NCBI RefSeq assembly: GCF_964204645.1
Contig: NW_027437452.1
Location: 1-64,000, forward strand
DNA from: Tubulanus polymorphus
Lineage: Eukaryota; Animalia; Nemertea
Direction: 5' to 3'
DNA: 64,000 bases
Positions 53,001 to 64,000 of this stretch are shown one piece after another. The position numbers and the translations under genes were made by a program. How positions within the stretch are numbered: position 1 is the stretch's first letter; the number at the start of each line of letters is the position of its first letter. The notes beneath the pieces are model-generated. The model saw only the letters and a list, made by a program, of their open reading frames with translations. It was not told the origin of the DNA and ran no database searches.

Positions 53001-56000
53001 TGTCGTTTTTTCGATAGGGGGAATATTTGATACGAAATCGTCTTTTCTCGCGCTGAACGACGTTTTCGCGTCGAAAAGTGCTTTTCCTGACGATTTGAGC
53101 GCTTTTACGCATCGACATTGTCGTTTTTCCGATAGGGGGAATATTTGATACGAAAACGTCTTTTCTCGCGCTGTACGACGTTTTTGCGTCGAAAAGTGCT
53201 TTTCCTGACGATTTGAGCGCTTTTACGCATCGACATTGTCGTTTTTTCGATAGGGGGAATATTTGATACGAAAACGTCTTTTCTCGCGCTGAACGACGTT
53301 TTCGCGTCGAAAAGTGCTTTTCCTGACGATTTGAGCGCTTTTACGCATCGACATTGTCGTTTTTCCGATAGGGGGAATATTTGATACGAAAACGTCTTTT
53401 CTCGCGCTGTACGACGTTTTTGCGTCGAAAAGTGCTTTTCCTGACGATTTGAGCGCTTTTACGCATCGACATTGTCGTTTTCCGGATAGGGGGAATATTT
53501 GATACGAAAACGTCTTTTCTCGCGCTGAACGACGTTTTCGGTCCGAAAAGTGCTTTTCCTGACGATTTGAGCGCTTTTACGCAACGACATTGTCGTTTTC
53601 CCGATAGGGGGAATATTTGATACGAAAACGTCTTTTCTCGCGCTGAACGACGTTTTTGCGTCGAAAAGTGCTTTTCCTGACGATTTGAGCGCTTTTACGC
53701 ATCGACATTGTCGTTTTCCCGATAGGGGGAATATTTGATACGAAAACGTCTTTTCTCGCGCTGAACGACGTTTACGGGTCGAAAAGTGCTTTTCCTGACG
53801 ATTTGAGCGCTTTTACGCATCGACATTGTCGTTTTTCCGATAGGGGGAATATTTGATACGAAAACGTCTCTTCTCGCGCTGAACGACGTTTTCGGGTCGA
53901 AAAGTGCTTTTCCTGACGATTTGAGCGCTTTTACGCATCGACATTGTCGTTTTTTCGATAGGGGGAATATTTGATACGAAAACGTCTTTTCTCGCGCTGA
54001 ACGACGTTTTCGCGTCGAAAAGTGCTTTACCTGACGATTTGAGCGCTTTTACGCATCGACATTGTCGTTTTTCCGATAGGGGGAATATTTGATACGAAAA
54101 CGTCTTTTCTCGCGCTGTACGACGTTTTTGCGTCGAAAAGTGCTTTTCCTGACGATTTGAGCGCTTTTACGCATCGACATTGTCGTTTTCCCGATAGGGG
54201 GAATATTTGATACGAAAACTTCTTTTCTCGCGCTGAACGACGTTTTCGGGTCGAAAAGTGCTTTTCCTGACGATTTGAGCGCTTTTACGCATCGACATTG
54301 TCGTTTTTCCGATAGGGGGAATATTTGATACGAAAACGTATTTTCTCGCGCTGTACGAAGTTTTCGCGTCGAAAAGTGCTTTTCCTGACGATTTGAGCGC
54401 TTTTACGCATCGACATTGTCGTTTTTCCGATCGGGGGAATATTTGATACGAAAACGTCTTTTCTCGCGCTGTACGACGTTTTCGCGTCGAAAAGTGTTTT
54501 TCCTGACGATTTGAGCGCTTTTACGCATCGACATTGTCGTTTTCCCGATAGGGGGAATATTTGATACGAAAACGTCTCTTCTCGCGCTGAACGACGTTTT
54601 CGGGTCGAAAAGTCCTTTTCCTGACGATTTGAGCGCTTTTACGCATCGACATTGTCGTTTTTTCGTTAGGGGGAATATTTGATACGAAAACGTCTTTTCT
54701 CGCGCTGAACGACGTTTTCGCGTCGAAAAGTGCTTTTCCTGACGATTTGAGCGCTTTTACGCATCGACATTGTCGTTTTTCCGATAGGGGGAATATTTGA
54801 TACGAAAACGTATTTTCTCGCGCTGTACGACGTTTTCGCGTCGAAAAGTGCTTTTCCTGACGATTTGAGCGCTTTTACGCATCGACACTGTCGTTTTCCC
54901 GATAGGGGGAATATTTGATACGAAAACGTCTTTTCTCGCGCTGAACGACGTTTTCGGGTCGAAAAGTGCTTTTCCTGACGATTTGAGCGCTTTTACGCAT
55001 CGACATTGTCGTTTTTCCGATAGGGGGAATATTTAATACGAAAACGTCTTTTCTCGCGCTGAACGACGTTTTCGGGTCGAAAAGTGCTTTTCCTGACGAT
55101 TTGAGCGCTTTTACGCATCGACATTGTCGTTTTTTCGATAGGGGGAATATTTGATACGAAAACGTCTTTTCTCGCGCTGAACGACGTTTTCGGGTCGAAA
55201 AGTGCTTTTCCTGACGATTTGAGCGCTTTTACGCATCGACATTGTCGTTTTTCCGATAGGGGGAATATTTGATACGAAAACGTCTTTTCTCGCGCTGAAC
55301 GACGTTTTCGGGTCGAAAAGTGCTTTTCCTGACGATTTGAGCGCTTTTACGCATCGACATTGTCGTTTTTCCGATAGGGGGAATATTTGATACGAAAACG
55401 TCTTTTCTCGCGCTGAACGACGTTTTCGGGTCGAAAAGTGCTTTTCCTGACGATTTGAGCGCTTTTACGCATCGACATTGTCGTTTTTCCGATAGGGGGA
55501 ATATTTGATACGAAAACGTATTTTCTCGCGCTGTACGACGTTTTCGCGTCGAAAAGTGCTTTTCCTGACGATTTGAGCGCTTTTACGCATCGACATTGTC
55601 GTTTTCCGGATAGGGGGAATATTTGATACGAAAACGTCTTTTCTCGCGCTGAACGACGTTTTCGGTCCGAAAAGTGCTTTTCCTGACGATTTGAGCGCTT
55701 TTACGCAACGACATTGTCGTTTTCCCGATAGGGGGAATATTTGATACGAAAACGTCTTTTCTCGCGCTGAACGACGTTTTTGCGTCGAAAAGTGCTTTTC
55801 CTGACGATTTGAGCGCTTTTACGCATCGACATTGTCGTTTTCCCGATAGGGGGAATATTTGATACGAAAACGTCTTTTCTCGCGCTGAACGACGTTTACG
55901 GGTCGAAAAGTGCTTTTCCTGACGATTTGAGCGCTTTTACGCATCGACATTGTCGTTTTTTCGATAGGGGGAATATTTGATACGAAAACGTCTTTTCTCG

Positions 56001-59000
56001 CGCTGAACGACGTTTTCGGTCCGAAAAGTGCTTTTCCTGACCATTTGAGCGCTTTTACGCATCGACATTGTCGTTTTCCCGATAGGGGGAATATTTGATA
56101 CGAAAACGTCTTTTCTCGCGCTGAACGACGTTTTCGGGTCGAAAAGTGCTTTTCCTGACGATTTGAGCGCTTTTATGCATCGACATTGTCGTTTTTCCGA
56201 TAGGGGGAATATTTGATACGAAAACGTCTTTTCTCGCGCTGAACGACGTTTTCGGGTCGAAAAGTGCTTTTCCTGACGATTTGAGCGCTTTTATGCATCG
56301 ACATTGTCGTTTTTTCGATAGGGGGAATATTTGATACGAAAACGTCTTTTCTCGCGCTGAACGACGTTTTCGCGTCGAAAAGTGCTTTTCCTGACGATTT
56401 GAGCGCTTTTACGCATCGACATTGTCGTTTTTCCGATAGGGGGAATATTTGATACGAAAACGTCTTTTCTCGCGCTGTACGACGTTTTTGCGTCGAAAAG
56501 TGCTTTTCCTGACGATTTGAGCGCTTTTACGCATCGACATTGTCGTTTTCCCGATAGGGGGAATATTTGATACGAAAACGTCTTTTCTCGCGCTGAACGA
56601 CGTTTTCGGGTCGAAAAGTGCTTTTCCTGACGATTTGAGCGCTTTTACGCATCGACATTGTCGTTTTTCCGATAGGGGGAATATTTGATACGAAAACGTC
56701 TTTTCTCGCGCTGAACGACGTTTTCGGGTCGAAAAGTGCTTTTCCTGACGATTTGAGCGCTTTTACGCATCGACATTGTCGTTTTTTCGATAGGGGGAAT
56801 ATTTGATACGAAAACGTCTTTTCTCGCGCTGAACGACGTTTTCGCGTCGAAAAGTGCTTTTCCTGACGATTTGAGCGCTTTTACGCATCGACATTGTCGT
56901 TTTTCCGATAGGGGGAATATTTGATACGAAAACGTCTTTTCTCGCGCTGTACGACGTTTTTGCGTCGAAAAGTGCTTTTCCTGACGATTTGAGCGCTTTT
57001 ACGCATCGACATTGTCGTTTTCCCGATAGGGGGAATATTTGATACGAAAACGTCTTTTCTCGCGCTGAACGACGTTTTCGGGTCGAAAAGTGCTTTTCCT
57101 GACGATTTGAGCGCTTTTACGCATCGACATTGTCGTTTTTCCGATAGGGGGAATATTTGATACGAAAACGTCTTTTCTCGCGCTGAACGACGTTTTCGGG
57201 TCGAAAAGTGCTTTTCCTGACGATTTGAGCGCTTTTACGCATCGACATTGTCGTTTTTTCGATAGGGGGAATATTTGATACGAAAACGTCTTTTCTCGCG
57301 CTGAACGACGTTTTCGCGTCGAAAAGTGCTTTTCCTGACGATTTGAGCGCTTTTACGCATCGACATTGTCGTTTTTCCGATAGGGGGAATATTTGATACG
57401 AAAACGTCTTTTCTCGCGCTGTACGACGTTTTTGCGTCGAAAAGTGCTTTTCCTGACGATTTGAGCGCTTTTACGCATCGACATTGTCGTTTTCCCGATA
57501 GGGGGAATATTTGATACGAAAACTTCTTTTCTCGCGCTGAACGACGTTTTCGGGTCGAAAAGTGCTTTTTCTGACGATTTGAGCGCTTTTACGCATCGAC
57601 ATTGTCGTTTTTCCGATAGGGGGAATATTTGATACGAAAACGTCTTTTCTCGCGCTGAACGACGTTTTCGGGTCGAAAAGTGCTTTTCCTGACGATTTGA
57701 GCGCTTTTACGCATCGACATTGTCGTTTTCCCGATAGGGTGAATATTTGATACGAAAACGTCTTTTCTCGCGCTGAACGACGTTTTCGGGTCGAAAAGTG
57801 CTTTTCCTGACGATTTGAGCGCTTTTACGCATCGACATTGTCGTTTTTTCGATAGGGGGAATATTTGATACGAAAACGTCTTTTCTCGCGCTGAACGACG
57901 TTTTCGCGTCGAAAAGTGCTTTTCCTGACGATTTGAGCGCTTTTACGCATCGACATTGTCGTTTTTCCGATAGGGGGAATATTTGATACGAAAACGTCTT
58001 TTCTCGCGCTGTACGACGTTTTTGCGTCGAAAAGTGCTTTTCCTGACGATTTGAGCGCTTTTACGCATCGACATTGTCGTTTTCCCGATAGGGGGAATAT
58101 TTGATACGAAAACGTCTTTTCTCGCGCTGAACGACGTTTTCGGTCCGAAAAGTGCTTTTCCTGACGATTTGAGCGCTTTTACGCATCGACATTGTCGTTT
58201 TCCCGATAGGGGGAATATTTGATACGAAAACGTCTTTTCTCGCGCTGAACGACGTTTTTGGGTCGAAAAGTGCTTTTCCTGACGATTTGAGCGCTTTTAC
58301 GCATCGACATTGTCGTTTTTTCGATAGGGGGAATATTTGATACGAAAACGTCTTTTCTCGCGCTGAACGACGTTTTCGCGTCGAAAAGTGCTTTTCCTGA
58401 CGATTTGAGCGCTTTTACGCATCGACATTGTCGTTTTTCCGATAGGGGGAATATTTGATACGAAAACGTCTTTTCTCGCGCTGTACGACGTTTTTGCGTC
58501 GAAAAGTGCTTTTCCTGACGATTTGAGCGCTTTTACGCATCGACATTGTCGTTTTCCCGATAGGGGGAATATTTGATACGAAAACGTCTTTTCTCGCGCT
58601 GAACGACGTTTACGGGTCGAAAAGTGCTTTTCCTGACGATTTGAGCGCTTTTACGCATCGACATTGTCGTTTTCCCGATAGGGGGAATATTTGATACGAA
58701 AACGTCTTTTCTCGCGCTGAACGACGTTTTCGGGTCGAAAAGTGCTTTTCCTGACGATTTGAGCGCTTTTACGCATCGACATTGTCGTTTTTCCGATAGG
58801 GGGAATATTTGATACGAAAACGTCTTTTCTCGCGCTGAACGACGTTTTCGGGTCGAAAAGTGCTTTTCCTGACGATTTGAGCGCTTTTACGCATCGACAT
58901 TGTCGTTTTTTCGATAGGGGGAATATTTGATACGAAAACGTCTTTTCTCGCGCTGAACGACGTTTTCGGGTCGAAAAGTGCTTTTCCTGACGATTTGAGC

Positions 59001-60637
59001 GCTTTTACGCATCGACATTGTCGTTTTTTCGATAGGGGGAATATTTGATACGAAAACGTCTTTTCTCGCGCTGAACGACGTTTTCGGGTCGAAAAGTGCT
59101 TTTCCTGACGATTTGAGCGCTTTTACGCATCGACATTGTCGTTTTCCCGATAGGGGGAATATTTGATACGAAAACGTCTTTTCTCGCGCTGAACGACGTT
59201 TTCGGGTCGAAAAGTGCTTTTCCTGACGATTTGAGCGCTTTTACGCATCGACATTGTCGTTTTTTCGATAGGGGGAATATGTGATACGAAAACGTCTTTT
59301 CTCGCGCTGAACGACGTTTTCGCGTCGAAAAGTGCTTTTCCTGACGATTTGAGCGCTTTTACGCATCGACATTGTCGTTTTTCCGATAGGGGGAATATTT
59401 GATACGAAAACGTCTTTTCTCGCGCTGTACGACGTTTTTGCGTCGAAAAGTGCTTTTCCTGACGATTTGAGCGCTTTTACGCATCGACATTGTCGTTTTC
59501 CCGATAGGGGGAATATTTGATACGAAAACGTCTTTTCTCGCGCTGAACGACGTTTTCGGTCCGAAAAGTGCTTTTCCTGACGATTTGAGCGCTTTTACGC
59601 ATCGACATTGTCGTTTTCCCGATAGGGGGAATATTTGATACGAAAACGTCTTTTCTCGCGCTGAACGACGTTTTTGGGTCGAAAAGTGCTTTTCCTGACG
59701 ATTTGAGCGCTTTTACGCATCGACATTGTCGTTTTTTCGATAGGGGGAATATTTGATACGAAAACGTCTTTTCTCGCGCTGAACGACGTTTTCGCGTCGA
59801 AAAGTGCTTTTCCTGACGATTTGAGCGCTTTTACGCATCGACATTGTCGTTTTTCCGATAGGGGGAATATTTGATACGAAAACGTCTTTTCTCGCGCTGT
59901 ACGACGTTTTTGCGTCGAAAAGTGCTTTTCCTGACGATTTGAGCGCTTTTACGCATCGACATTGTCGTTTTCCCGATAGGGGGAATATTTGATACGAAAA
60001 CGTCTTTTCTCGCGCTGAACGACGTTTTCGGGTCGAAAAGTGCTTTTCCTGACGATTTGAGCGCTTTTACGCATCGACATTGTCGTTTTTCCGATAGGGG
60101 GAATATTTGATACGAAAACGTCTTTTCTCGCGCTGAACGACGTTTTCGGGTCGAAAAGTGCTTTTCCTGACGATTTGAGCGCTTTTACGCATCGACATTG
60201 TCGTTTTTTCGATAGGGGGAATATTTGATACGAAAACGTCTTTTCTCGCGCTGAACGACGTTTTCGCGTCGAAAAGTGCTTTTCCTGACGATTTGAGCGC
60301 TTTTACGCATCGACATTGTCGTTTTTCCGATAGGGGGAATATTTGATACGAAAACGTCTTTTCTCGCGCTGTACGACGTTTTTGCGTCGAAAAGTGCTTT
60401 TCCTGACGATTTGAGCGCTTTTACGCATCGACATTGTCGTTTTCCCGATAGGGGGAATATTTGATACGAAAACTTCTTTTCTCGCGCTGAACGACGTTTT
60501 CGGGTCGAAAAGTGCTTTTCCTGACGATTTGAGCGCTTTTACGCATCGACATTGTCGTTTTTCCGATAGGGGGAATATTTGATACGAAAACGTCTTTTCT
60601 CGCGCTGAACGACGTTTTCGGGTCGAAAAGTGCTTTT
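41042..60637. repeat. Satellite DNA subfamily B (~166 monomers of 118 bp, highly homogeneous)
   Basis: Consensus GAATATTTGATACGAAAACGTCTTTTCTCGCGCTGAACGACGTTTTCGGGTCGAAAAGTGCTTTTCCTGACGATTTGAGCGCTTTTACGCATCGACATTGTCGTTTTTCCGATAGGGG; colinear with A, about 11 diagnostic substitutions, no 128-bp form seen. Confidence 0.98.
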
Positions 60638-61018
60638 TGCAACAGAAAATAAGTCGGAACAAATTGTTAGATGGAAAAGGCCAAGCGCCCCAGCTGCTTG
60701 ACGTTTATTTGAAAAATTATACCAAAACACGTGACAACCTAATTTGCTGTCACGTACAAAATTACAATATCATCAATCTAACAAAGAAATACAAAGTCAT
60801 ACAAAACTAACTAGGTCAACCGCCCCAGCTGGATTGACCTAGTTTCTGATTTAAACAATTATCGGAAAAAATACTACGCGGTCAAACGCCCCTGCTGTTT
60901 GACCTATTTATGAATACAAGTAACTACACCACTATTACTAAGAAGTCAAACGCCCCAGCTGTTTGACCTAGTTCGGAGTAAAAAGTCCTCGATTAATCGT
61001 AAGTGGGCTATAAAAATG
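60634..61018 (-). repeat. Terminal direct repeat B2 (385 bp)
   Basis: Identical by eye to 61274-61658 (offset 640); minus-strand AATAAA at 60704-60709. Confidence 0.95.
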
Positions 61019-61273
61019 GGCTAGAAAAGATTAATCGTAAGAGGGCTAACAAATGCCGTAGGCGCAGGTAGGGGATGGAGGGTGGTAAAATGTTAAACTT
61101 TACGCCTGAGTTCCGGAACTGAAAAGGACGTGTTTACTTCGCGTTGATTGGCTGGTTGGCTAATAGCACGAGGGCGGCGCCACCGGCTGGTGCTATGTTG
61201 CCCGCCGGGAGAAGAACTTCATTTTCTGTCGCAAAAATGCTGATGGGCAACTGGTCATTCGCACATCTTTTGT
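61019..61273 (-). repeat. Putative repeat A2 (255 bp), expected to recur at the element's 5' end
   Basis: Unique segment between the two B copies; the role is inferred from the A1-ORFs-B1-A2-B2 architecture and the partner copy is not in the window. Confidence 0.65.
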
Positions 61274-61658
61274 TTTTTGCAACAGAAAATAAGTCGGAAC
61301 AAATTGTTAGATGGAAAAGGCCAAGCGCCCCAGCTGCTTGACGTTTATTTGAAAAATTATACCAAAACACGTGACAACCTAATTTGCTGTCACGTACAAA
61401 ATTACAATATCATCAATCTAACAAAGAAATACAAAGTCATACAAAACTAACTAGGTCAACCGCCCCAGCTGGATTGACCTAGTTTCTGATTTAAACAATT
61501 ATCGGAAAAAATACTACGCGGTCAAACGCCCCTGCTGTTTGACCTATTTATGAATACAAGTAACTACACCACTATTACTAAGAAGTCAAACGCCCCAGCT
61601 GTTTGACCTAGTTCGGAGTAAAAAGTCCTCGATTAATCGTAAGTGGGCTATAAAAATG
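61274..61658 (-). repeat. Direct repeat B1 (385 bp)
   Basis: Begins 36 nt after the YR stop codon; identical to 60634-61018. Confidence 0.95.
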
Positions 61659-61694
61659 CCACAAAGCCACCCACCTGTGGCTGAGCCCACACGA

Positions 61695-62648
61695 TCACCT
61701 CGCAATCCTTATGTATTTACGGAAGGCCTCGGAATTCCACCGGCCTGCCGCCCTAATCTGTGCGTCGGGGACTCCCCTCGATGCTGCATCGGTTGCAGCG
61801 CCGATGCGGAAGGAGTGACCCTTGAACGCCCTAGGTGACAGTTTACACCATTCCAGCAGGCACACGAGGCGACGGTCGAATGCTCGCCTTAACCACGGAG
61901 CTCCACTGCAGTCTATAAAAAGCGGGCCTGGACGCGGGCCTCGGCGCTGTAAATAAGTGGTGATAGTCGATCGGGCATCGGTAACCCTGGTCGAAAGGGA
62001 GGAAAAATCAACCTGTATGACCTGAGGGCCAACGCGTGCGCTGTGCTTAAACTTCTTTAGGACTATTTGGAGACCAAAGGCGGTGAGTGCCACGTCTTCG
62101 AGCTGTACTACACTCTGCGTTAGGGCGAGTGTCCTCGGTAAGAGCTCCCCTAGGCGGAAATAACCACAAAACGCGATGGTCATAACCGATTTCACTAAAA
62201 GGCGGTTGTAGGACAGACTTTCCGTCACAGCAAGACAGTCAAATAAACGGGCCAAAACATCTGCGGTAATTGGGAGACGAACGTCGAAACTCCGCGATAG
62301 ATTTCTCGCGCCTGCTAACATTTTCTGAATGATAAATGATCGACAAGGGTCGGCTTCCCCTTTTATCTTGTGAAAATATGAAATTGCCGACAATGTCGAC
62401 GCAGTAGCTGCGGCCGACAAACCCTTTTCGTGCAAATGTGCGACGAACAAGACGATGGAATATTCTGAAAGTGGGACCAAAATTGTGATGCCCAACTGCT
62501 GGCCAAACGCGACTAGCTTACCCCAAGACCGATCATAGGCCTTCGCGGTTTCCGTCGTCAAAGCCGCTGCTAACAGGGCGTCTATAGTAGGTTTATATTT
62601 GCTGGCAGCCAAGACTGGGGAACCGGCGTAGGTTGAGGGTCGGCCCAT
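61695..62648 (-). CDS. Tyrosine recombinase (phage-integrase family) of the YR retrotransposon
   Basis: 317-aa ORF with the catalytic set FRLGEL (R), HSFRIGAAT (H-x-x-R) and GRWNSEAFRKY (W, Y); N-terminal core-binding region with LSAISYFHK; overlaps the RT-RNase H ORF by 67 nt. Confidence 0.95.
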   Translation of the reverse strand: MGRPSTYAGSPVLAASKYKPTIDALLAAALTTETAKAYDRSWGKLVAFGQQLGITILVPLSEYSIVLFVAHLHEKGLSAAATASTLSAISYFHKIKGEADPCRSFIIQKMLAGARNLSRSFDVRLPITADVLARLFDCLAVTESLSYNRLLVKSVMTIAFCGYFRLGELLPRTLALTQSVVQLEDVALTAFGLQIVLKKFKHSARVGPQVIQVDFSSLSTRVTDARSTITTYLQRRGPRPGPLFIDCSGAPWLRRAFDRRLVCLLEWCKLSPRAFKGHSFRIGAATDAASRGVPDAQIRAAGRWNSEAFRKYIRIAR

Positions 62649-64000
62649 GGCGCTTCCATGCGAAATCGACGAAACTGGAACCGAGAAAGTAGGTCGGGTA
62701 AAATGTTATATTTTCCGGGTATATGTTCGCTAATGAAAACGATGTTAAATTTCAAACAAACAGAGACCATCTTGCGTACGAGGGTCATCATAGCCTTGTC
62801 CCGTGAAGATTGTTTATTAATAACGTGGACCACCGATTGGTTATCGGAATTAAAACATATAGTCTTATTTTTCCAATGTGCCCCCCAGATTGATAGTGCG
62901 GCAACGATTGGGTATAGTTCAAGGACCGCGATCGAACAAGACTTCCAGCTTAAAGGCCACGAACCGTGGAACCAGTGGGTGCCGTAAACGGCACCGTAAC
63001 CAAAAGCACCGGCGGAATCAGTGTACAAATTCAAACGATCGTTAGTGAGCTTACGCTCATCGATGAAAAATGATCGACCGTTAAAATTTGAAAGGAAGAC
63101 GTTCCAGACCCGGAGATCATTCTTCGCGCTCGCCGTCAGTGAAATGTGCAACGAACGGTGAGGCACGCCCACGGTGAGGTCGATCAGCCTCCTGAGAAAC
63201 GGTCGTCCCGGTACGATGACTGAGCAGGCAAAATTCAACGTCCCTAGTAGTGACTGTAACTCTCGCAAAGTCACTTTCCGTTTAGACAGGAATGTTTCCA
63301 CCAGGGCCATGCATTTTGCCAATTTATCTTCCGGCAAACGTGCCTCGTGCAAAATAGTATCGAGCATGATGCCGGCAAACGGTAGGATTTGCGACGGGCG
63401 AAAAGTTTTGACTTCCTTTATGGGTACGCCGAGCTGTTCGCATAGGTCAAGAAAATTTATCAGATCGCGGTCGCACTTAGATTTGCCCTTAGCAATAATC
63501 AAAAAATCATCTAAAATATGTACAATGTGGGAAATCCCGAGCTTATTAATCGCAATCCATTTAATACACGACGAGAACCGGTCAAAAATCGCGCAGGAGC
63601 TGGCTGCGCCCATGGGCAGAACAGCGTCGACGTAAAAAAGACCGTCTAAAGTGAAACCCAACAGTGGTTGGTCTAACTTATGTATAGGGATTATCCTGAA
63701 AGCCGACTCTATGTCGGTCTTTGCTAGGAAAACATCGTCACCAAGGGACTTGATGATTTTAATCGCATCCTGGATTGTCGAGTATTTAATGGTGGATGCC
63801 TCCTCGGGAATAAAATCGTTTATCGACGAGCCTTCCGGGTACGATAGATGATGAATAACCCTAAAACCCCCGGAGCTTTTAGGAACTACCCCTAGGGGTG
63901 AAACGTGAATTGGGGTACCGTCCGGCATGAATGGAGTCTGAAAAGGGCCCAGAACTCTACCCGTTGCAAGCTCTTTGTTGACTCTTTCGCGTATCACGTC
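62582..64000 (-). CDS. Reverse transcriptase-RNase H, 5'-truncated by the window edge
   Basis: SPLGVVPK, FRVIHHLS, KTDIESAFRIIP, LPMG, HILDDFL; RNase H motifs YTDSAG, LELYPI, SDNQSV, HIPGKYNILPDLLSR; uninterrupted for at least 471 aa. Confidence 0.96.
   Translation of the reverse strand, partial: DVIRERVNKELATGRVLGPFQTPFMPDGTPIHVSPLGVVPKSSGGFRVIHHLSYPEGSSINDFIPEEASTIKYSTIQDAIKIIKSLGDDVFLAKTDIESAFRIIPIHKLDQPLLGFTLDGLFYVDAVLPMGAASSCAIFDRFSSCIKWIAINKLGISHIVHILDDFLIIAKGKSKCDRDLINFLDLCEQLGVPIKEVKTFRPSQILPFAGIMLDTILHEARLPEDKLAKCMALVETFLSKRKVTLRELQSLLGTLNFACSVIVPGRPFLRRLIDLTVGVPHRSLHISLTASAKNDLRVWNVFLSNFNGRSFFIDERKLTNDRLNLYTDSAGAFGYGAVYGTHWFHGSWPLSWKSCSIAVLELYPIVAALSIWGAHWKNKTICFNSDNQSVVHVINKQSSRDKAMMTLVRKMVSVCLKFNIVFISEHIPGKYNILPDLLSRFQFRRFRMEAPWADPQPTPVPQSWLPANINLL

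Follow-up and report, generated by a model that had tools for sequence, protein, structure and literature searches.

A repeated stem-loop with a family-specific loop in the terminal repeat of an Ngaro-type retrotransposon of Tubulanus polymorphus, a candidate recognition signal on the element's RNA

How retrotransposons of the DIRS order select, prime, and package their own RNA is almost entirely unknown. This question is raised by a 64,000-nt stretch of the genome of the nemertean Tubulanus polymorphus (contig NW_027437452.1, positions 1 to 64,000, forward strand; hereafter the window), in which the terminal repeat B of an Ngaro-type tyrosine recombinase (YR) retrotransposon carries several hairpins with a common loop. 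What are these hairpins, and what might read them? The reading that we prefer, tentatively and as the best of several rather than as probable in itself, is that they are a clade-specific, multi-copy stem-loop on the sense RNA of the element, which a protein encoded by the element would recognize via the loop and its 5' flank. That the folded molecule is RNA, that its reader is a protein, and which step of the life cycle is served are what we infer from comparisons of sequences.

The hairpin array and its counterpart in a sister family

Repeat B contains four hairpins (H1 to H4; Table 1) with the common loop GCCCCWGCT on the + strand, i.e. AGCWGGGGC in the sense orientation of the element (minus strand). 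A preliminary description of this locus had listed these four hairpins, and every coordinate and sequence in it proved correct. The loop motif occurs 8 times in the 64 kb, when 0.02 occurrences are expected and 0 of 100 shuffles reach 8, and all eight matches are on the + strand and inside the two copies of B only. Loops start at 60687, 60822, 60888, and 60952 (spacings of 135, 66, and 64), and the whole array is indeed present twice, recurring at +640, B1 being identical to B2. H1 and H4 read CAAGC-GCCCCAGCT-GCTTG (60682-60700) and GTCAAAC-GCCCCAGCT-GTTTGAC (60945-60967) on the + strand, whereas their arms and loops on the sense strand are AAUAAACGUCAAGC-AGCUGGGGC-GCUUGGCC and AACUAGGUCAAAC-AGCUGGGGC-GUUUGACU, respectively. 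H3 reads GGTCAAAC-GCCCCTGCT-GTTTGACC on the + strand and, with its sense 5' arm written out, AAAUAGGUCAAAC-AGCAGGGGC-GUUUGACC. Variants of H2 display another bulge base, or the bulge is missing (L020, L018). The array spans 290 nt, with its last unit 43 nt from the end of the element, and the spacers between units are unrelated, as had been proposed, their mutual similarity being no higher than chance. Repeat B as a whole is predicted to fold better than its own shuffles on both strands (z of -2.7 for sense and -4.4 for antisense).

In the predicted fold, the 9-nt loop closes further: two G-C pairs form, an A is bulged out, and UGGG, AGGG, or UAGG remains as a tetraloop. The self-complementary AGCU, earlier proposed as a possible means of kissing-loop dimerization, has 4 nt, compared with about 6 nt exposed on a stem in a retroviral DIS-type kissing hairpin. 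It is present in three of the four loops here and in all loops of the sister family described below, and the predicted fold pairs its G2-C3 with G8-C9 inside the loop. Five of the eight units in the two families show an A/T-rich extension followed by TAGGTCA, a 5' flank whose conservation reaches past the paired part. H1 and the sister-family units c and d have CGTCA instead of GGTCA. A fifth hairpin, ACGTGACA / TGTCACGT, with an 11-nt loop of other sequence, may be a diverged unit because the sister family carries the regular unit c at this place.

A search of the genome with the YR protein identified this second family, whose YR is 55% identical in amino acid sequence and whose 3' region contains units with the loop AGCUAGGGC. 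When the 3' regions of the two families are aligned, conserved blocks stand out amid unalignable sequence. These are the stem-loop after the YR stop codon, the hairpins H4/a, H3/b, and H1/d, the last together with the preceding AAUAAA, the B|A junction, and parts of A including a CCAAT box. Units thus occupy three orthologous places in both families, and H1 and unit d are identical at 46 of 47 nt, flanks and AAUAAA included. H2 is found only in the window's family and unit c only in the sister family. Two sister-family loci are of note. One copy (L065, G000:C6:13898300-13900000) has lost most of YR and retains an intact B1-A2-B2 with all hairpins; near it, C6:12909322-12910734 contains three copies of B with a 568-nt period.

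This comparison disposes of one property that had been ascribed to the array. The regular ~65-bp lattice, compared to a repeat-spacer arrangement, holds in the window's family only; sister-family spacings are 71, 103, and 58, and a copy in which unit d is duplicated adds one of 38, so that the lattice is not a conserved property. A CRISPR-like regular array is discarded on the same grounds, there being no constant period. The loop, on the other hand, is constrained position by position. In intact copies, the two families never vary at positions 1-3 and 6-9, and at position 4 each has either U or A. They part at position 5, which is G throughout the four units of the window's family and its close variants and A throughout those of the sister family, the three orthologous pairs included. 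Such a parallel change in units whose orthology is defined by their flanks needs either a family-specific reader or homogenization among units. Because the loop differs although both families share the same host factors, it fits a reader encoded by each family, and a host factor common to both appears a less natural reader.

Stem pairing, strand, and the candidate readers

The preliminary description also stated that the stems show compensatory changes. We confirmed this, both between units and between families. At the second pair counted from the loop, H2 has C-G, H1 and d have G-C, and the other five units (H3, H4, a, b, and c) have A-U. Unit b differs from its orthologue H3 by an additional A that is matched by an additional U, and by one G-U pair; in unit c, two A's and two U's are additional. 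The 5' and 3' arms of the same unit pair over 7.5 contiguous bp on average, versus 3.7 bp for arms of different units, and when the 3' arms are permuted only 12 of 40320 permutations reach the observed pairing sum. We also built a covariance model of the unit (R1), which has 147 matches genome-wide. In the model-fitted alignment of all matches, which leans toward structure and contains related sequences, 91% of cells are paired versus 80% in shuffles, and the covariation score is 0.32 versus 0.12 (0 of 500 shuffles). These pairing and covariation figures, for the covariance-model check that had been suggested, are therefore supportive but not decisive.

In old dead copies, by contrast, changes are one-sided and disruptive, with CpG decay in stems and loops. 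Variation within the window's family was uninformative as a test of selection, variants being nearly all singletons and hairpins not depleted of them. Given these disruptive changes in dead copies and the undiminished variation of the hairpins among young ones, mutational bias does not account for the order between families. The units look selected, as judged from blocks kept against unalignable spacers between families with 55% identical YR. The idea that the hairpins are a selected single-stranded cis-acting structure thus stands as far as selection and compensated stem changes go, and more weakly as regards the strand.

Might the units nevertheless lack a function of their own? It is unlikely, in our estimate, that one palindromic unit was simply copied within B, its arms being kept complementary by DNA-level processes (quasi-palindrome correction via intrastrand template switching) or by homogenization during reverse transcription. 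All units clearly descend from one ancestral unit, their number varies (H2 in one family only, c in the other only, and one copy with a duplicated d), the motif is limited to one clade, and homogenization would account for the concerted loop change, all of which speaks for such copying. Three orthologous units in elements whose spacers have diverged to randomness are hard to reconcile with it without constraint, however, and it also leaves the uncorrected arms of dead copies and the wobbles on one strand only to be explained.

Two of these wobbles are at 60681/60701 (C.A on the + strand) and 60944/60968 (A.C on the + strand). As first reported, these mismatches become G.U only in the sense orientation, and each is followed by another Watson-Crick pair. 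Altogether, three non-Watson-Crick stem positions (in H1/d, b, and the outer pair of H4/a) are G-U in sense and A.C on the other strand, and none is a wobble on the other strand only. Predicted stability over the eight units is higher for sense in six, equal within 0.2 kcal/mol in one, and lower in one. The sense strand is therefore weakly favored. In addition, with the longer stems the gap that separates the outer GGTCA/TGACC halves changes by 2 to 4 bp. A hairpin can accommodate this variation, and a protein dimer bound to duplex DNA would not, which favors a folded single strand. In DIRS-1, first-strand cDNA is a single-stranded intermediate (PMC7192593). Here, first-strand cDNA would have A.C at the wobble places, which makes sense RNA the best candidate for the folded molecule.

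These observations also bear on whether host factors read the units, either as elements for RNA 3'-end processing, export, or stability, or as transcription factor sites on double-stranded DNA, an explanation that we regard as unlikely too. WAWNTAGGTCA, with its flank conserved past the paired part in five of eight units, resembles monomeric nuclear-receptor sites, CAGCTG is present in three loops of the window's family, and the conserved AATAAA abuts H1. There is also precedent for a host-read signal, since simple retroviruses have repeated 3' elements with export roles. Yet a common host factor would lead one to expect the same loop in both families of one genome, whereas every unit differs. 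Moreover, CAGCTG is not kept in the sister family, H1, c, and d lack GGTCA, and compensated stem insertions are unexpected for half-site recognition on duplex DNA.

It is more improbable still that the units are DNA sites for the tyrosine recombinase of the element, whether core-like, accessory synaptic, or folded single-stranded DNA like integron attC, to which they had been likened. The element does encode a YR, the inverted arms surround an asymmetric center that is identical across the units of one family, as crossover partners require, and DIRS-1 cDNA is single-stranded (PMC7192593). Arm length, however, varies from 7 to 13 bp, which makes the distance between outer half-sites variable. 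Tyrosine recombinase core sites usually have a spacer of 6-8 bp, and the center here is 9 bp. A lox/FRT/dif-type core on duplex DNA, with two inverted arms at a fixed distance, was rejected for these reasons, since units b and c have arms longer by 1-2 bp and H2 has a bulge. True core sites in direct repeat would recombine away what lies between them, and the sole deletion seen (L020) is out of register. The wobbles are on the sense strand, not on first-strand cDNA. An attC site is an imperfect palindrome, long enough to hold recombinase-binding boxes in two pairs, that has extrahelical bases and varies in its center. The analogy fails because stems of 7-13 bp with at most one bulge are too short to hold the two binding boxes of an attC arm, and because the conserved part is the loop, not the stem.

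A better candidate for the crossover site is probably the B|A junction, which insertion junctions point to. At each of the eleven distinct 3' junctions, TTGCAA|AAA gives way to unrelated flank (60637 in the window; L001, L004, L006, L008-L010, L012, L013, L018, and L021), and the junction lies in a conserved block with a short inverted repeat (Table 1). It is on account of these uniform 3' junctions and this block that we favor it.

Two further candidates were tried for the loop. A long-range partner was rejected, since the 6680-bp element lacks GCCCCWGCT in sense orientation, its two 7-mer complements are not matched by covarying ones in the sister family, and no complementary partner for the loops was found elsewhere in the element of either family. 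A tRNA primer-binding site was rejected because UGGGGCG could face CGCCCCA, but the sister-family UAGGGCG cannot face CCA.

We return to the reading in which a protein of the element recognizes a stem-loop on its RNA. The units would fold on sense RNA, in the 3' untranslated terminal repeat B. Each would consist of a 7-13 bp stem built on GGUCAAAC/GUUUGACC and a 9-nt loop, AGCWRGGGC, probably closed further by a bulged A, two G-C pairs, and a WRGG tetraloop, with a conserved single-stranded 5' flank (WAWNUAG) in most units. An RNA that extends from B1 into B2 would contain two arrays. Most likely, the units would serve as several sequence-specific sites for an element-encoded protein (the product of the gag-like ORF, reverse transcriptase (RT), or YR), and these sites might single out the transcript of the element for packaging or for reverse transcription. 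As the last unit lies between AAUAAA and the U-rich end of B, it may have a part in 3'-end formation.

Several points weigh against this reading. With its TAGGTCA, the conserved 5' flank is also similar to a half-site for nuclear receptors on duplex DNA. The strand argument consists of three events (p ~0.13), too few for significance. Four sequencing runs that contain the element, none of them recorded as RNA, look like DNA runs (the satellite has a depth of ~1e5, and other flanks are present as loose ends), and one possible RNA run does not contain the element, which is no evidence either way. Only two lineages were compared, both from one genome, and homogenization among units, e.g. by template switching, could also give the concerted loop change. 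Model R1 finds no unit in those more distant Ngaro families of the same genome that were compared (YR 32-43%), nor in the loci L066-L068 from other species. Hairpin and repeat scans of L066, L067, L068, and L105-L108, which are from other species (YR 43-47% identical) and include two loci with intact split direct repeats, detected no array. The superfamily thus does not need the motif, and its generality for Ngaro elements finds no support in these comparisons. Retention of hairpin and loop in related elements, another check that had been suggested, is seen in the sister family, which keeps three units, but not in distant families.

The host element, its setting, and other conserved blocks

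The host element is a 6680-bp Ngaro-type YR retrotransposon on the minus strand, with the layout A1, SGNH ORF, gag-like ORF, RT/RNase H (RH), YR, B1, A2, B2. The split direct repeats A1-[ORFs]-B1-A2-B2 that define this class (PMC9210276, PMC8547959) are present, the order being established by 190 nt of A2 that recur as A1 beyond the window. Pfam matches in its ORFs are RVT_1, Phage_int_SAM_1/Phage_integrase, and a GDSL-like hydrolase in ORF1, with no DDE integrase or methyltransferase among them, and the gag-like ORF has no Pfam match. On its sense strand, A2 contains a CCAAT box (e.g. 61147-61151) and a GC-rich block, both kept in the sister family, which fits a promoter in A as far as sequence conservation goes. 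The 69 nt of A2 beside B2 (61018-61086) are not in A1 and include a partial copy, ~30 nt long, of the sense start of B.

Table 1. Positions of the features of the element and its surroundings in the window
Feature	Position	Strand	Remarks
118-bp satellite array hosting the insertion	54000..60636	.	54000 is the start of the part considered
Repeat B2, 3' terminal copy of split direct repeat B	60637..61017	-	381 nt; 100% identical to 61277-61657; element end 60637 adjoins satellite
H1, last unit in sense order	60680..60702	-	GUCAAGC-AGCUGGGGC-GCUUGGC; 7 bp including one G-U; directly 3' of AAUAAA
AATAAA (sense strand)	60704..60709	-	candidate polyadenylation signal; abuts H1; kept in sister family
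Fifth hairpin, ACGTGACA / TGTCACGT	60729..60755	-	11-nt loop of other sequence; at the place of sister-family unit c; B1 copy 61369-61395
H2	60809..60844	-	13-bp stem with one bulged base (U in sense); loop AGCUGGGGC; no sister-family orthologue
H3	60880..60904	-	GGUCAAAC-AGCAGGGGC-GUUUGACC; orthologue of sister-family unit b
H4, first unit in sense order	60943..60969	-	9 bp on sense strand including one G-U; loop AGCUGGGGC; orthologue of unit a
Repeat A2	61018..61276	-	259 nt; 190 nt nearest B1 recur as A1 at C35:67127-67316, beyond the window
B1|A2 junction block	61262..61290	-	sense TTTCTGTTGCAA|AAAACAARAGATG; conserved between families; short inverted repeat around A-run; candidate recombinase crossover site
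Repeat B1, internal copy	61277..61657	-	381 nt; same hairpins at +640: 61320-61342, 61369-61395, 61449-61484, 61520-61544, 61583-61609
Two-level stem-loop just 3' of YR stop	61637..61691	-	outer stem GTGGGCT/AGCCCAC, inner hairpin AGCCAC/GTGGCT; B starts inside
Tyrosine recombinase ORF	61695..62648	-	317 aa from first ATG; Phage_int_SAM_1, weak Phage_integrase
RT/RNase H ORF	62582..63997	-	RVT_1; cut by window end

The AATAAA that abuts H1 is a putative polyadenylation signal, judged by its sequence and place. In the 268-Mb genome, the element family has at least 18 copies of B (97-100% identity) at 13 loci, with B-A-B in 5 of the 13 and a single B in the other 8. The single-B loci, which have B after YR and are without A2-B2 (L008-L014 and L018, compared with L001-L007 and L015-L017), could stem from B1 x B2 recombination or from a different integration product. 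The element is inserted in an array of at least 55 units of a 118-bp satellite (95-99% identity). Word depth of this satellite in DNA runs is 275,000-664,000 (~1e5) versus 20-300 on the element, which makes it a major satellite of the T. polymorphus genome. Copies of the element at C35, C52, and C4:13.56 Mb share one insertion place in the satellite unit, and both orientations occur.

The two-level stem-loop just 3' of the YR stop codon has counterparts of the same architecture at L039:2441-2497, L066:4961-5021, L068:4911-4970, L105:3945-3999, L107:3903-3962, and L108:3899-3953, where it begins 10-30 nt past the stop codon. Ngaro elements of other species (YR 44-47% identical) have GGTGGGG/CCCCACC and GGTCAC/GTGACC, i.e. 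pairs are kept despite changes on both sides. The conservation of this stem-loop reaches much further than that of the hairpin array, and it may be the more general cis element.

Novelty of the array and comparison with known systems

An Rfam 15 scan of 60500-61800 at a permissive threshold gave no match on the hairpins, and only two chance-level matches to a miRNA model in A2 (E 0.12 and 0.92). Exact-pattern scans with the 19-nt core gave 14 single matches in metagenomes and 19 in prokaryote genomes, about what chance would give, in unrelated bacterial contigs and without arrays. Papers on Ngaro and DIRS elements (PMC7192593, PMC9210276, PMC8547959, PMC3783388, and PMC4157794) describe only terminal repeats, or a single proposed 3' hairpin for DIRS-1, and do not mention such hairpins. 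Given these negatives and the lack of the array in distant families, it is a novel motif, confined to one clade as far as seen, in line with the preliminary description, which knew of no earlier account of it. Two pairs of R1 matches (C2:16633504-16633615, with matches at 16633504 and 16633573, and C2:16639113-16639224, with matches at 16639113 and 16639182) lie 230-300 nt 3' of YR fragments that are 39% identical, at loci 5.6 kb apart, and may represent a third, more distant family with the motif.

The array is nevertheless a known sort of thing, cis-acting hairpins in retroelement terminal repeats, and not a new kind of system. A bolder claim, which we find doubtful, would make it the first cis-acting recognition signal to be defined in a YR retrotransposon (Ngaro/DIRS order). 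It would then be a multivalent code of RNA stem-loops, with the second base of the WRGG tetraloop (G versus A) ensuring private recognition by the protein of each family. If true, sister families in one genome would not mobilize each other's RNA. The array offers a first concrete, testable cis signal for a YR retrotransposon. As its motif is short and repeated and differs naturally by a single base in a sister family, it is a direct handle on which element protein binds, on whether it binds RNA or DNA, and on a G/A specificity switch. Were it only a clade-specific relic, the finding would still show what the 3' regions conserve, namely the hairpin after the YR stop and the B|A junction.

Among known systems, integron attC, lox, and FRT sites resemble the units in having inverted arms around an asymmetric center, in an element that encodes a tyrosine recombinase. 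They differ in that arms here are short and variable, the center is 9 nt, direct copies are several, and the evidence for crossover is at the B|A boundary. Stem-loops in terminally repeated RNA are familiar from retroviruses, where TAR, poly(A), DIS, and psi of HIV-1 are short hairpins in the R region and leader. The likeness includes presence in both repeat copies, association of one hairpin with AAUAAA, and loops that are specifically read or self-complementary (AGCU here). In the Ngaro element, however, one unit is repeated four to five times in the 3' repeat of a YR element, and the loop palindrome is only 4 nt. Dispersed packaging signals of single-stranded RNA viruses and pregenomic RNA (pgRNA), in which several stem-loops with one short loop motif bind coat protein, are similar in their multiple stem-loops with one loop motif, varied stems, and unrelated spacers; here, the gag-like ORF is without a Pfam match and, as for the retroviral comparison, the array is known from its sequence.

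Stringent LINEs, such as eel UnaL2, have 3' stem-loops that are recognized by RT. For DIRS-1, a hairpin at the mRNA's 3' end was proposed as a self-primer (Poulter and Goodwin, cited in PMC7192593). These are likewise hairpins in 3'-terminal retroelement RNA, proposed as the entry point of reverse transcription, but they are single and at the very 3' end, whereas the Ngaro array is spread over B and stops short of the end. Finally, the constitutive transport element (CTE) of Mason-Pfizer monkey virus and the direct repeat (DR) elements of Rous sarcoma virus are read by host export factors. As repeated, structured 3' untranslated elements beside a terminal repeat they resemble the array, but they are host-read, whereas the family-specific loop described here argues for a reader encoded by the element.
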